A stretch of 64,000 nucleotides of DNA from Schizochytrium sp. TIO01 (GCA_004764695.1 SMSO01000011.1:1-64000), one strand, 5' to 3'. Positions 41,190 through 48,993 are shown, counted from the stretch's first letter. Made by a program: numbers and translations. Notes: generated by a model from the letters alone, not told the origin.

Positions 41190-44100
41190 TTATTTCAATA
41201 TGTAAGGGCCTAGACATCCCAATGTTGCATGAAAGGCAACATTTGCAGCTTCCAGCAAATCAAGCTCTACTTTCTGCGCAGCAATATAGTCCTCTTTCGG
41301 ACTCAGCTCACCAAAGCTGTTAGCAGGCCAAGCTTGTGCAAGAAGACTGCGCTTCACTGAAAACGGCAGACTAAATACATTGTTTATAACATGTATACAA
41401 CGAGGCTCACGAGATATCTGTTCAAGCCTTTTCCTTCTTGCCTTTGCAGAACAAATTTGCTTATTCAATTCGAGCTCCTTGTACAATTCATCCGTCAACC
41501 CATCGGACATTCTAAGGATCAGTAAAAACCAAATGACATCAACTCCGTTCGTCAGTTAACAATTTCACGTCATCAAAAGGCACCCACAGTATTGCCAGTA
41601 CAGTTTCATTTATTCTCTGATATTATCATGTTCTTTGTTACATCCACAATCAATCAAACAAACAATTCCGCAACAAACTTGCAATGACGCGAAGAAAAAC
41701 ATCGGGAAAACAACACAGTAGACAACCCACGACGCAGCAAACCAACCAAGTCTCATGCACAAATCAGTACACGAGCTATTGCTTAAACAACTTACTCAAG
41801 TAATGTCAGCGACCAGTTCACTTTCAGCGCCGCAGCCACTGCCTTTTCGCCCTCGTCGTCGATATTGTTATTACTAAGACTGTTGATATGATTGAATGAT
41901 GGCAAGCAATACATTACATTGCAATGCATTACATTGGATACATGCATGGACATGAGTGATCTAGGTTGGCTGTCAGGATTTATCTTTGTTGTGTTGTCAT
42001 TTTGCTCTTTGTTCAATGGATGTATACTCACTCAAACAGACAACTCATCCATCCATCCATTCATCCATCCATCCATCAAACAAACAAACAAACAAACAAA
42101 CAAACAAAAAAAAACGAGAGATTGCATAAACTTGCAAAACAACACCGACCCACCCACCAAACAACAAACCAACCATCATGTACAAACAAGTCCACGAGCT
42201 GCGGTGTTGAGTAGACAACTTACACAAGTGATGTCAGCGACCGGTTCTCTTTCAGCGCCGCAGCCACTGCCTTGGCGCCCTCGTCACCGATATAGTTGCC
42301 TCCAAGACTGTCGATTTGATTGAATGATGGCAAGCAATACATTACACGTTACATATTACAATAGATGCACGCATGCATGTATGGGCGTGAGTGATCTAGG
42401 TTGACTTTCAGGATTTATCTTTGTTGTGTTGTCATTTTGCTCTTTATTCGATGGATGTATACTCACTCAAACAGAGAACCCATCCATCCATCAATCAAAC
42501 AAGCGATTGCATAAACTTGCAAAACCAACACTGACCCACCCACCAAATAACAAACCAAGCATCATGTACAAACAAGTCCACGAGCTGCGGTGTTGCGTAG
42601 ACAACTTACTCGAGTGATGTCAGCGACCGGTTCTCTTTCAGCGCTGCAGCCACTGCCTTGGCGCCCTCTGAGCCGATATAGTTGCCATAAAGACTGTTGA
42701 TTTGATTGAATGATGGCAAGCAATACATTACACGTTAAATATTACAATAGATGCACGCATGCAAGCATGGACGTGAGTGATCTAGGTTGGCTTTCAGCAT
42801 TTATCTTTGTTGTGTTGTCATTTTGCTCTTTGTTCGACGGATGTATACTCACTCAAACAGACAACTCATCCATCCATCAAACAAACAAGCCATTACATAA
42901 ACTTGCTTGCCAAAACAACACCGACCCACCCAACAAACAACAAACCAAGCATCATGTACAAACAAGTCCACGAGCTGCGGTGTTGCGTAGACAACTTACG
43001 ATAGTGATGTCAGCGACCGGTTCTCTTTCAGCGCCGCAGCCACTGCCTTGGCGCCCTCTGAGCCGATATTGTTGCCCCAAAGACTGTCGATTTGATTGAA
43101 TGATGGCAACCAATACATTACACGTTACATATTACAATAGATGCACGCATGCATGCATGGACGTGAGTGATCAAGGTTGACTTTCAGCATTTATCTTTGT
43201 TGTGTTGTCATTTTGCTCTTTATTCGATGGATGTATACTCACTCAAACAGACAACCCATCCATCCATCAAACAAACAAGCGATTGCATAAACTTGCAAAA
43301 CAACACCGACCCACCCACCAAATAACAAACCAAGCATCATGTACAAACAAGTCCACGAGCTGCGGTGTTGCGTAGACAACTTACTCAAGTGATGTCAGCG
43401 ACCGGTTCTGTTTCAGCGCCGCAGCCACTGCCTTGGCGCCCTCTGAGCCGATAGCGTTCCACAAAAGACTGTCGATTTGATTGAATGATGGCACGCAATA
43501 CATTACACGTTACATATTACAATAGATGCACGCATGCATGCATGGACGTGAGTGATCTAGGTTGGCTTTCAGCATTTATCTTTGTTTTGTTGTCATTTTG
43601 CTCTTTGTTCGATGCATGTATACTCACTCAAATAGAGAACTCATCCATCCATCAAACAAACAAGCGATTGCATAAACTTGCAAAACAACACCGACCCACC
43701 CACCAAACAACAAAGCAGGCATCATGTGCAAACAAGTCCACAAGCTGCGGTGTTGCGTAGACAACTTACTCAAGTGATGTCAGCGACCGGTTCTCTTTCA
43801 GTGCCGCAGCCACTGCCTTGACGCCCTCTGAGCCGATCTGGTTGTAGGAAAGACTGTCGATTTGATTGAATGATGGCAAGCAATACATTACACGTTACAT
43901 ATTACAATAGATGCACGCATGCATGCATGGACGTGAGTGATCTAGGTTGGCTTTCAGGATTTATCTTTGTTGTGTTGTCATTTTGCTCTTTGTTCGATGG
44001 ATGTATCCTCACTCAAACAGAGAACTCATCCATCCATCAATCAAACAAGCGATTGCATAAACTTGCAAAACAACACCGACCCACCCACCAAACAACAAAT

Positions 44101-47100
44101 CAAGCATCATGTACAAACAAGTCCACAAGCTGCGGTGTTGCGTAGAGAACTTACTCGAGTGATGTCAGCGACCGATTCTCTTTCAGCGCCGCAGCCACTG
44201 CTTTGGCGCCCTCGTCGCCGATATTGTTGCGTTGAAGACTGTCGATTTGATTGAATGATGGCAAGCAATACATTACACGTTACATATTACAATAGATGCA
44301 CGCATGCATGCATGGACGTGAGTGATCTAGGGTTGGCTTTCAGCATTTATCTTTGTTGTGTTCTCATTTTGCTCTTCGTTCGATGCATGTATACTCACTC
44401 AAACAGACAACCCATCCATCCATCAAACAAACAAGCGATTGCATAAACGTGTAAAACAACACCGACCCACCCACCAAACAACAAACCAAGCATCATGTAC
44501 AAACAAGTCCACGAGCTGCGGTGTTGCGTAGACAACTTACACAAGTGATGTCAGCGACTGGTTCTCTTTCAGCGCCGCAGCCACTGCCTTGGCGCCCTCT
44601 GAGCTGATATCGTTGCGTTGAAGACTGTCGATTTGATTGAATGATGGCAAGCAATACATTACACGTTACATATTACAATAGATGCACGCATGCATGCATG
44701 GACGTGAGTGATCTAAGTTGGCTTTCAGCATTTATCTTTGTTGTGTTGTCATTTTGCTCTTTGTTCGATGCATGTATACTCACTCAAACAGACAACCCAT
44801 CCATCAAACAAACAAACAAGCGATTGCATAAACTTGCAAAACAACACCGACCCATCCACCAAACAACAAACCAAGCATCATGTACAAACAAGTTCACAAG
44901 CTGCAGTGTTGCGTAGACAACTTACAAAAGTGATGTCAGCGGCCGGTTCTCTTTCAGCGCCGCAGCCACTGCCTTGGCGCCCTCGTCGCCGATACTGTTG
45001 TATCCAAGACTGTCGATTTGATTGAATGATGGCAACCAATACATTACACGTTACATATTACAATAGATGCACGCATGCATGCATGGACGTGAGTGATCAA
45101 GGTTGGCTTTAAGCATTTATCTTTGTTGTGTTGTCATTTTGCTCTTTGTTCGATGCATGTACACTCACTCAAACAGACAACTCATCCATCCATCAAACAA
45201 ACAAACTACCAATTGCATATACTTGCAAAACAACACCGACCCACCCACCAAACGACAAAGCAAGCATTATGTACAAACAAGCCCACGAGCTGCGGTGTTG
45301 CGTAGACAACTTACAATAGTGATGTCAGCGACCGGTTCTCTTTCAGCGCCGCAGCCACTGCCTCGGCGCCCTCTGAGCCGATCTCGTTGTTTTCAAGACT
45401 GTCGAGTTGATTGAATGATGAGCAATACATTACACGTTACATATTACAATAGATGCACGCATGCATGCATGGACGTGAGTGATCTAGGTTGGCTTTAAGC
45501 ATTTATCGTTGTGGTGTTGTCATTTTGCTCTTTGTTCGATGCATGTATACTCACTCAAACAGAGAACTCATCCATCCATCAAACAAACAAGCGATTGCAT
45601 AAACTTGCAAAACAACACCGATCCACCCAACAAACAACAAACCAAGCATTATGTACAAACAAGTCCACGAGTTGCGGTGTTGAGTAGACAACTTACGATA
45701 GTGATGTCAGCGACCGGTTCTCTTTCAGCGCCGCAGCCACTGCCTTGGCGCCCTCTGAGCCGATATCATTGCCATAAAGACTGTCGATTTGATTGAATGA
45801 TGGCAAGCAATACATTACACGTTACATATTACAATAGATGCACGCATGCATGCATGGACGTGAGTGATCTAGGTTGGCTTTCAGCATTTATCTTTGTTGT
45901 GTTGTCATTTTGCTCTTTATTCGATGGATGTATACTCACTCAAACAGACAACCCATCCATCCATCAAACAAACAAGCGATTGCATAAACTTGCAAAACAA
46001 CACCAACCCACCCAACAAACAACAAACCAAGCATCAGTACAAACAAGTCCATGAGCTGCGGTATCTGCCGTGTTGCAAAGACAACTTACGATAGTGATGC
46101 CAGCGACCGGTTCTCTTTCAGCGCCGCAGCCACTGCCTTGGCGCCCTCTGAGCCGATCTCATTACTCGAAAGACTGTCGATTTGATTGAATGATGGCAAC
46201 CAATACATTACACAAAACACATTACATAAGATACATGCGTGGACGTGAGTGCTCTATGTTGGCTTTCAGGATTTCATCTTTGTTGTGTTGTCATTTAGCC
46301 CCCTGTTCGATGGATGCATACTCAGTCAAACAGACAACTTCTTTTCCACCAAACAAACAAGCGCTTACATAAACTTGCAAAACAACACCAACCCACCCAC
46401 CAACCAACAAAGCAAGCATCATGTACAAACAAGTCCATGAGCTGCGGTGTCTGCCGTGTTGCAAAGACAACTTACAATAGTGATGTCAGCGACTGGTTCT
46501 CTTTCAGCGTCGCAGCCACTGCCTTGCCGCCCTCGTTGCAGATCGTGTTCCGTCGAAGACTGTCGATTTGATTGAATGATACATGACACATTACATATTA
46601 CACATTGCATTAGATGCATGCAGGAACGTGAGTGATCTATGTTGGCTTTCAGCATTTCATCTTTGTTGTGCTGTCATTTGGCCCTTTGTTCGATGGAGGT
46701 ATATTCAGTCAAACAGACAACTTATCCGTCCATAAAACAACCCAGCGATTGTATAAACTTGGAAAATAACACCGAACAAAACAACACACCAACAAACCAA
46801 GCATCATTTGCAAACAAGGCCATAAGCTACGGTGTTGCGTAGACAACTTACTTGAGTTTTGTCAGCGACCAGTTCTCTTTCAGCGCCACAGCCACTGCCT
46901 TGGCGCCCTCTGAGCCGATTTTGTTCGCAGTAAGACTGTCGATTTGATTGAATGATGGCAAGCAATACATTACACGTTACATATTACAATAGATGCACGC
47001 ATGCATGCATGGACGTGAGTGATCTAGGTTGGCTGTCAGGATTTATCTTTGTTGTGTTGTCATTTTGCTCTTTGTTCGAGGCATGTATACTCACTCAAAC

Positions 47101-48799: not shown

Positions 48800-48895
<96 letters not shown>

Positions 48896-48993
48896 GACCG
48901 AGCGACCGAGAGTACCATGTTAACTTACTACAATGTTGTAGCGCCGTTCCGAAGCTGCTCAAGGGCATCGACAACATCTGGGTGGTCTGACAT
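41190..48993 (-). CDS. Multi-exon LRR protein gene 2 (RI/NLRC3-type LRRs, 18 LRR exons, 20 exons total, 632 aa, apparently intact)
   Basis: Exon 1 is 48929-48993 ([21 protein letters not shown] + TA|GTAAGT). The 84-nt LRR exons are at 48433-48516, 48048-48131, 47631-47714, 47245-47328, 46852-46935, 46476-46559, 46090-46173, 45697-45780, 45315-45398, 44926-45009, 44541-44624, 44155-44238, 43770-43853, 43385-43468, 43000-43083, 42610-42693, 42224-42307 and 41796-41879; all are CAG|...|GTAAGT, phase 2 and stop-free. The terminal exon 41190-41511 follows TACTGATCCTTAG ([18 protein letters not shown]...GPYILK*). Spliced CDS 65+1512+322=1899 nt, in frame. Confidence 0.9.
41780..48790. repeat. Tandem ~385-bp exon+intron array 2 (18 units), the LRR cassette array
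   Basis: Lower exon boundaries at 43000, 43385, 43770 and 44155 give a 385-bp period. Confidence 0.97.
48800..48895. repeat. (AAGC)n microsatellite in intron 1 of LRR gene 2
   Basis: Perfect tetranucleotide run of ~95 bp at the same relative position as in gene 1. Confidence 0.96.

Follow-up and report, generated by a model that had tools for sequence, protein, structure and literature searches.

What are the tandem units of about 385 bp that lie between the 5S and 18S ribosomal RNA genes at a chromosome end of the protist Schizochytrium sp. TIO01: structural spacer DNA, as such units have been published, or something else? The question is raised by a stretch of 64,000 nt (GCA_004764695.1, SMSO01000011.1:1-64000; hereafter the ‘window’), which begins with a (TAACC)n telomere at positions 1-409, and in which Tandem Repeats Finder reports 17 copies of a period-385 unit at 42108-48701. 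An earlier note on this DNA had read the units as the exons and introns of a spliced leucine-rich repeat (LRR) gene, here called gene 1, running along the minus strand from 48993 to 41190. We find that the evolution of the sequence, together with homologues in which the same parts are contiguous, strongly supports this reading; the spacer units are probably pieces of a spliced, protein-coding gene.

As modelled, gene 1 consists of 20 exons—a 65-nt exon carrying the ATG, 18 LRR exons of 84 nt and a 322-nt terminal exon—giving 65 + 18 × 84 + 322 = 1899 nt, or 632 codons and a stop. In a scripted scan of the minus strand every LRR exon is preceded by (G/A)ACAG, followed by GTAAGT, and open only when read from its second base. 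All 19 introns are in phase 2, the split codon (position ‘x5’ of the repeat, see below) being formed from the last two nucleotides of one exon and the first base of the next (T; A in two copies). Our reading of the strand and the script agree with the earlier note on each of these points: coordinates, 84-nt exons, splice sites, the 65-nt and 322-nt end exons, phase and a product of 632 amino acids (aa). The features of gene 1 are as follows, with LRR exons 2 and 4 to 17 given as placed by the scripted scan:

48929..48993, minus strand: exon 1, 65 nt; ATG, 21 codons + 2 nt, ending ...GATTL + TA, donor GTAAGT
48517..48928, minus strand: intron 1, containing a (GCTT)n microsatellite at 48800-48895
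48433..48516, minus strand: LRR exon 1, 84 nt; Pfam LRR_6 E 1.8e-4
48048..48131, minus strand: LRR exon 2, 84 nt
47631..47714, minus strand: LRR exon 3, 84 nt; Pfam LRR_6 E 2.1e-4
47245..47328, minus strand: LRR exon 4, 84 nt
46852..46935, minus strand: LRR exon 5, 84 nt
46476..46559, minus strand: LRR exon 6, 84 nt
46090..46173, minus strand: LRR exon 7, 84 nt
45697..45780, minus strand: LRR exon 8, 84 nt
45315..45398, minus strand: LRR exon 9, 84 nt
44926..45009, minus strand: LRR exon 10, 84 nt
44541..44624, minus strand: LRR exon 11, 84 nt
44155..44238, minus strand: LRR exon 12, 84 nt
43770..43853, minus strand: LRR exon 13, 84 nt
43385..43468, minus strand: LRR exon 14, 84 nt
43000..43083, minus strand: LRR exon 15, 84 nt
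42610..42693, minus strand: LRR exon 16, 84 nt
42224..42307, minus strand: LRR exon 17, 84 nt
41796..41879, minus strand: LRR exon 18, a distinctive last repeat (...KVNWSLTLL) of a type that closes the arrays at many other loci
41512..41795, minus strand: last intron, 284 nt, not of the repeat type; acceptor TTAG
41190..41511, minus strand: terminal exon; 1 nt + 106-codon helical tail + TAA, with AATAAA overlapping the stop

Exon 1 has no hydrophobic stretch and the protein is therefore placed inside the cell: the predicted product would be a 632-aa intracellular protein that lacks a signal peptide and in which an LRR solenoid leads into a long helix. Each LRR exon ends in a phase-2 GTAAGT donor (e.g. 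48427-48432), so that any retained intron reads xxG TAA, an immediate in-frame stop; RNAs spliced in part or not at all would thus give LRR proteins cut short after any number of repeats. Much of the length variation of the LRR introns lies in runs of (GGAT)n/(GTTT)n.

The case for exons is carried by a census of 22 loci, taken from 99 genome-wide copies of the tail exon and comprising the two genes of the window (gene 1 and a paralogue, gene 2, described below) and 20 loci from elsewhere in the genome. Of 293 homologous segments detected there by BLAST, 290 consist of exactly 84 nt bounded by AG and GT, a count that includes one GC donor, and the donor reads GTAAGT in 285 of the 290. The coding frame contains no stop in 7,830 codons, while the two alternative frames contain 215 and 611. 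That indels would be confined to the introns is borne out, an alignment of 252 units having gap-free exon columns and 191 insertion columns within the introns, whose lengths (261-690 nt) take 53 different values among the 268 measured. Diversity (π) is 0.005 in the donor hexamer, 0.046 in the last 25 nt of the intron and 0.076 in the intron body. An exon pattern of this kind is far beyond chance, and from it, and from the contiguous LRR-plus-tail homologues described below, we infer that gene 1 is spliced and translated.

The 18 exon translations of gene 1 align without a gap and share invariant L1, N4, I6, L18, L24 and L27, the pattern of the 28-residue repeat of the ribonuclease inhibitor (RI) type. 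A 27-column profile built from the exons matches RI-type LRR chains in the PDB, including MOP84A, DRC5, RSP15, GALA proteins and NOD2; alignment, invariant positions and profile matches all sustain the earlier note in assigning one RI-like LRR to each 84-nt exon. The homologue P0010 (JGI data, 267 aa) scores 81.8 bits against the Pfam family LRR_6 (PF13516), and its structural model shows six β/α repeats and a long helix (predicted local distance difference test, pLDDT, 86.7; predicted template modelling score, pTM, 0.79), for which Foldseek returns the LRR domains of tropomodulin, NOD2, NLRP and ribonuclease inhibitor. The gene model, with its 21-codon first exon, LRR exons and tail, contains no NACHT, NB-ARC, kinase or ROC-COR domain; we therefore rejected its identity as an NLR or a ROCO protein.

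Against this constant framework, variation is concentrated in a few codons. Values of π reach 0.37-0.74 at exon nucleotides 5-10, 14-16, 23-25 and 82-84 (nucleotide 15, at 0.25, being the exception), falling to about 0.04 over the other exon nucleotides, with 0.072 in the introns. The variable sites correspond to x5 (the intron-split codon), x7, x8 and x10 of LxxLxLxxNxI, i.e. the β-strand and the turn that follows it. LRR residues at these positions face the concave, ligand-binding side of the solenoid and, by analogy, the variable residues here may be ligand binders. For the scaffold codons, non-synonymous (dN) and synonymous (dS) divergence by the Nei-Gojobori method are 0.042 and 0.090 (ratio 0.46), with dS near the intron divergence of 0.076; judged by these rates, the scaffold is under purifying selection. 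At the three fully hypervariable codons dN is 1.2, or 16 times the intron value—in line with the ‘diversifying’ family that the earlier note had proposed—with 15-17 different residues at each, and the hypervariable codons contain no stop where 45.9 would be expected from column frequencies. Four codons per repeat are near saturation, and 271 exons display 228 different four-residue signatures. The same contrast is found over a short time-scale in one duplicate pair of loci (L047/L048), which differ at 6 of 180 hypervariable sites (3.3%) and at 12 of 3295 intron sites (0.36%), a ninefold difference (Fisher p 2e-4). Several of these differences alter two or three bases of one codon together, which would fit short conversion tracts that reshuffle existing variants; diversity would on these patterns be generated through recombination plus diversifying selection.

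A count of loci genome-wide, which the earlier note had suggested, gives 99 tail matches of 35-100% identity, 93 of them without a stop, and so upholds its view of a multi-copy family linked to telomeres and rDNA (the ribosomal RNA gene units). The family comprises about 90 genes, located at chromosome ends and each with its own repertoire of variable residues; complete genes have from about 9 to 20 LRR exons. Of 18 loci examined, 17 retain the ATG, phase and donor of exon 1, which measures 65 nt in 16 cases and 56 nt in one (82-97% nucleotide identity); at these 17 the frame is complete from the ATG exon into the array, with the tail exon next and in phase. Many of the apparently ‘internal’ tail matches, at megabase positions on contigs C13, C24, C30, C31, C33 and C34, occur as pairs in opposite orientation 30-40 kb apart, such that the records look like chromosomes joined end to end; this suggests that these matches, too, are subtelomeric. 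A compact subfamily packs about 5 LRR exons and a tail 35-42% identical to that of gene 1 into about 1.6 kb (C5:7.4-9.0 kb, C30:13.9-15.5 kb, C31:5690-5692 kb and about 15 more sites, near chromosome ends); its counterpart in the marine transcriptome collection MMETSP is the transcript P0004. A third tail class is represented by P0006, P0009 and P0010 (JGI, Logan and MMETSP data). The second gene of the window is laid out as follows:

16100..23271, minus strand: gene 2, paralogue of gene 1; 16 LRR exons of 84 nt, from 22746 to 16718, one with the donor GTATGT
23206..23271, minus strand: gene 2 exon 1, 66 nt, +1 relative to the family, with an extra C
16100..16418, minus strand: gene 2 terminal exon, homologous to the tail exon of gene 1

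The intron-1 microsatellite, (AAGC)n/(GCTT)n, has 24 copies in gene 1 (48800-48895) and 72 in gene 2 (22905-23193). A 160-aa open reading frame (ORF) at 22902-23384 is an artefact of this microsatellite.

Whether the tail belongs to the same polypeptide as the repeats is a separate matter. Across 27 distinct tail copies the frame contains no stop, compared with 266 and 190 in the out-of-frame readings. Tail diversity (0.115) exceeds that of both flanks (0.085 and 0.096) and, on its sequence, the tail is fast-evolving and mosaic rather than tightly constrained; blocks recombine in differing combinations, as gene conversion among chromosome ends would give. It carries a basic patch, KARRKR. Searches with the tail gave no match in Pfam and no usable match in the ESM Atlas, and a loci search with the tail alignment returned no relatives; modelled alone with AlphaFold2 it is all-helical, with three helices, albeit weakly (pLDDT 62.8, pTM 0.30). 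Two database proteins, P0004 (MMETSP, 250 aa) and P0010, pass in one chain from RI-type LRRs through a last repeat with an ‘N-W’ motif into a homologous tail. In P0010 the sequence ...ANWILKIF stands directly before the tail, the N-W motif being common to it and to LRR exon 18 of gene 1, and in its model the last LRR strand continues straight into the long tail helix. P0004 maps piecewise to chromosome-end regions of this genome, with about one LRR per piece and 57-93% identity per piece. A search with the LRR region of P0010 found generic RI-LRR proteins only, none with the exon-array signature, and a 30-nt core of the exon had no match in a metagenome scan. One further candidate, P0005 (2,338 aa), was discarded as a tail homologue, its match being spurious and due only to a short repeated AWPANSFG motif.

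Three other accounts of these data have to be weighed, the most conservative being that the units are what they were published as, namely non-coding structural repeats (‘LORE-TEARS’) that serve the maintenance of chromosome ends or rDNA, with the LRR reading a coincidence of a GC-rich conserved block. The published description, of repeats without GenBank similarity and with a proposed role in end maintenance, speaks for this, as does the satellite-like manner in which exons and introns are homogenised together. It leaves unaccounted for, however, the freedom from stops of one frame in three, the exact 84 nt of nearly all copies while their flanks vary in length and the splice signals are conserved, variable sites that are whole codons at canonical LRR surface positions (no stops, where 46 are expected), and a conserved ATG exon and tail exon in matching phase; we regard it as extremely improbable. 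A group of observations tells against the gene model. Three of the 293 segments carry one to three additional bases in runs of G or T, and in gene 2 an additional C within GACCCACCC of exon 1 brings a TGA into the ATG frame, the remainder of that gene being intact. Searched exon by exon against Pfam, single exons reach 21.8 and 21.5 bits for LRR_6 (E about 2e-4) and so narrowly miss the gathering cut-off of 23.4; each exon spans model positions 10-24 and continues into the first part of the following repeat. The tail, with dN/dS of about 0.87, gives no clear purifying signal, and its case therefore rests on retention of the open frame. The only database proteins of the same tail class are four MMETSP ORFs (P0001-P0003 and P0011), 105-109 aa long and labelled ‘complete’, all of which start at the tail's own Met; no longer protein with this tail class is present among 1.8 billion protein representatives searched without a length limit, a hint of last-intron retention or of a transcription start inside that intron.

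The genomic defects in this group could mean that the family was recently silenced and is decaying in heterochromatic subtelomeric rDNA, kept uniform by concerted evolution and not productively expressed. The frameshift in gene 2, the insertions in three LRR segments, stops in 6 of the 99 tails, the dN/dS of the tail and the lack of any spliced ORF of this tail class in a collection of 15 billion proteins would all follow. Yet the defects affect about 1% of exons, and they occur in homopolymer runs of contigs that are small or terminal, a setting in which errors of long-read sequencing are to be expected: the three exceptional segments, on an 18.5-kb contig and near a contig end, may be such errors or real decay, and the extra C of gene 2 is either a real frameshift or a homopolymer error of the same origin. 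Tails with identity as low as 35% remain open, recent duplicates differ preferentially at hypervariable sites, which suggests ongoing selection or conversion, and repetitive messenger RNAs assemble poorly from short reads, so that absence from transcriptome ORF sets is weak evidence; on balance we think decay unlikely. The MMETSP ORFs, for their part, could be explained by two translation units, with the LRR protein ending elsewhere (e.g. at the TAA of a retained intron) and the 106-aa tail translated from a conserved ATG as a small protein by itself, the transcript beginning within the last intron or keeping it unspliced. In keeping with this, the terminal exon begins with a single A followed by ATG at most loci, P0001-P0003 and P0011 start at that Met, and the genomic frame is closed 9-18 codons upstream of the tail. 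The best matches of these ORFs in this genome reach no more than 87-91% identity; the ORFs must therefore derive from another strain or from chimeric assembly. Four tail copies (L022, C25:42.5 kb; L024, C13:110 kb; L025, C27:5 kb; L026, C6:2585 kb) have ATT in place of ATG, yet in all four the TAG acceptor is intact and the frame open; three contain no Met whatever in that frame, and the fourth none before residue 41. P0004 and P0010 have LRRs and tail in one polypeptide, with the same N-W repeat before the tail and, in the P0010 model, a tail helix continuous with the last LRR strand, and in both window genes the last LRR exon is in the right phase for the tail frame. Separate units are, in our estimation, very unlikely, and a joined LRR-plus-tail protein about ten times likelier.

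Taking the spacer units as exons of one spliced gene, we can place that gene within its surroundings. The window contains three rDNA units, with 28S, 5.8S and 18S genes on the minus strand and 5S on the plus strand, along with transfer RNA (tRNA) genes, several of which lie in the spacer between the 5S and 28S genes. Gene 1 is flanked as follows:

49454..49572, plus strand: 5S rRNA gene, divergent from gene 1 and 460 nt from its ATG
35781..37567, minus strand: 18S rRNA gene, on the same strand as gene 1 and 3.6 kb downstream of its stop

The arrangement recurs for each gene, the divergent 5S gene lying 440-460 nt from the ATG and the gene ending about 3.6-3.7 kb before the 18S gene; a third gene has its tail at about 74.8 kb on this contig, just past the end of the window. 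Two further tandem arrays, of period 370 (803-3010) and period 417 (4670-5890), contain no LRR-like frames and no ORF of at least 70 aa and, unlike the period-385 array, do not look like exon arrays. The ORF listing for the window holds no other frame of at least 150 aa outside the microsatellite artefact mentioned above. Two tRNA matches, at 57934-58039 and 31210-31324, are 106 and 115 nt long and therefore probably contain introns.

We propose, then, that each rDNA intergenic spacer at the chromosome ends would hold a protein-coding gene between a divergent 5S gene and a same-strand 18S gene. With all 19 introns in phase 2, unequal crossing-over or gene conversion could add, remove or exchange LRR units and leave the frame intact. 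Each rDNA unit would have its own variant of the LRR gene. If this is right, a published feature of the genome has to be re-read, with the commonest ‘spacer repeat’ at every chromosome end of a model thraustochytrid being in fact some 90 protein-coding genes. To our knowledge, protein-coding genes transcribed by RNA polymerase II are unusual within rDNA intergenic spacers. Genes built as arrays of short exons are, moreover, hidden by six-frame ORF tracks and by repeat maskers alike.

A conserved scaffold, four near-saturated surface codons and the frame-neutral exchange of cassettes are together the signature of families engaged in host–pathogen or self/non-self recognition. This protist is known as a carrier of persistent mirusviruses, and the spacer LRR genes are a candidate for immunity in such a host. 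One might go further and suppose that the roughly 90 genes form a germline, recombination-driven recognition repertoire, in which ectopic exchange between subtelomeric ends would shuffle phase-2 LRR cassettes and short variable patches, placement in rDNA chromatin would limit expression to one or a few ends at a time, and the products would detect non-self inside the cell, for instance the mirusviruses resident there; the whole would amount to an innate-immune or antigen-variation-like system built physically into the rDNA unit. In its full form we hold this to be a rather unlikely scheme, and any role in recognition or defence, the mirusvirus link included, is pure conjecture.

Of the systems with which the family can be compared, animal NLRs (NOD2, NLRC3, NLRP) and ribonuclease inhibitor have the same 28-residue LxxLxLxxNxIGxxGaxxLaxaL repeat, and LRR exons of 84 nt are found in NOD2 and NLRC3 as well. 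The proteins predicted here differ from these NLRs in that NACHT/NB-ARC and effector domains are absent: a first exon of 21 residues leads directly into the LRRs, and a helical tail makes up the remainder. With the variable lymphocyte receptors of lampreys they have in common hypervariable x positions of the LRR β-strand and diversity drawn from many LRR units. Lamprey receptors are assembled somatically, from cassettes inserted into an incomplete germline gene, whereas the present loci are complete in the germline, with a full frame from the ATG exon at 17 of the 18 examined.

The LORE-TEARS described for Aurantiochytrium limacinum include, as ‘Group 0’, repeats of about 385 bp between 18S and 5S that lack GenBank similarity and may serve in chromosome-end maintenance (bioRxiv 10.1101/2023.06.15.545109). 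Group 0 is the same object as our array (units of about 385 bp, telomere-proximal 18S to 5S, TTAGG telomeres), and the period-370, -417 and -385 arrays of the window match the positions of Groups 2, 1 and 0, respectively. The difference lies in the reading, Group 0 units being taken here as the exons and introns of an LRR gene; the words ‘leucine’ and ‘LRR’ are absent from the preprint, and LRRs go unmentioned in some later Aurantiochytrium papers. Within the stramenopiles, the candidate LRR-ROCO and LRR-kinase receptors of Ectocarpus have one LRR per 72-nt exon; their exons are shuffled and their concave-face residues positively selected (Zambounis et al. 2012, PMC3341825), the one-repeat exons and the shuffling having been cited in the earlier note as well. 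One LRR per exon, variable sites at concave-face positions and, probably, exon shuffling with positive selection are features that our family shares; it departs from the Ectocarpus genes in lacking ROC-COR, kinase and NB-ARC domains, in the length and class of its repeat, and in its location within rDNA spacers rather than dispersed clusters.

The closest known kind is found in Tetrahymena, whose LRR arrays are made of 90-bp exons of one exact length in units of about 347 bp, with more than 98% phase-2 introns, a junction codon, variable exon number, ectopic recombination, subtelomeric enrichment and mainly purifying selection; the arrangement was stated as not known elsewhere (2019, PLoS Biol, PMC6564038). 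The likeness, which the earlier note had not drawn, extends to one LRR per exon of fixed length, the bias to phase 2, the split junction codon, a unit of a few hundred bp (385 bp here, 347 bp in the ciliate), the variation in exon number among paralogues, probable ectopic recombination and the subtelomeric location. In Schizochytrium, on the other hand, the exons are of 84 nt and RI-type rather than 90 nt, a difference that suggests an origin independent of the ciliate genes; the genes number about 90 and not thousands, four codons per repeat are near saturation where mainly purifying selection prevails in the ciliate, no association with retrotransposons is seen, and the genes lie in rDNA spacers between 5S and 18S and end in a conserved helical tail. 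What sets the spacer genes apart is thus the 84-nt RI-type unit, the helical tail, the four near-saturated codons and, above all, their position; a location inside rDNA spacers, in DNA published as non-coding repeats, is new.

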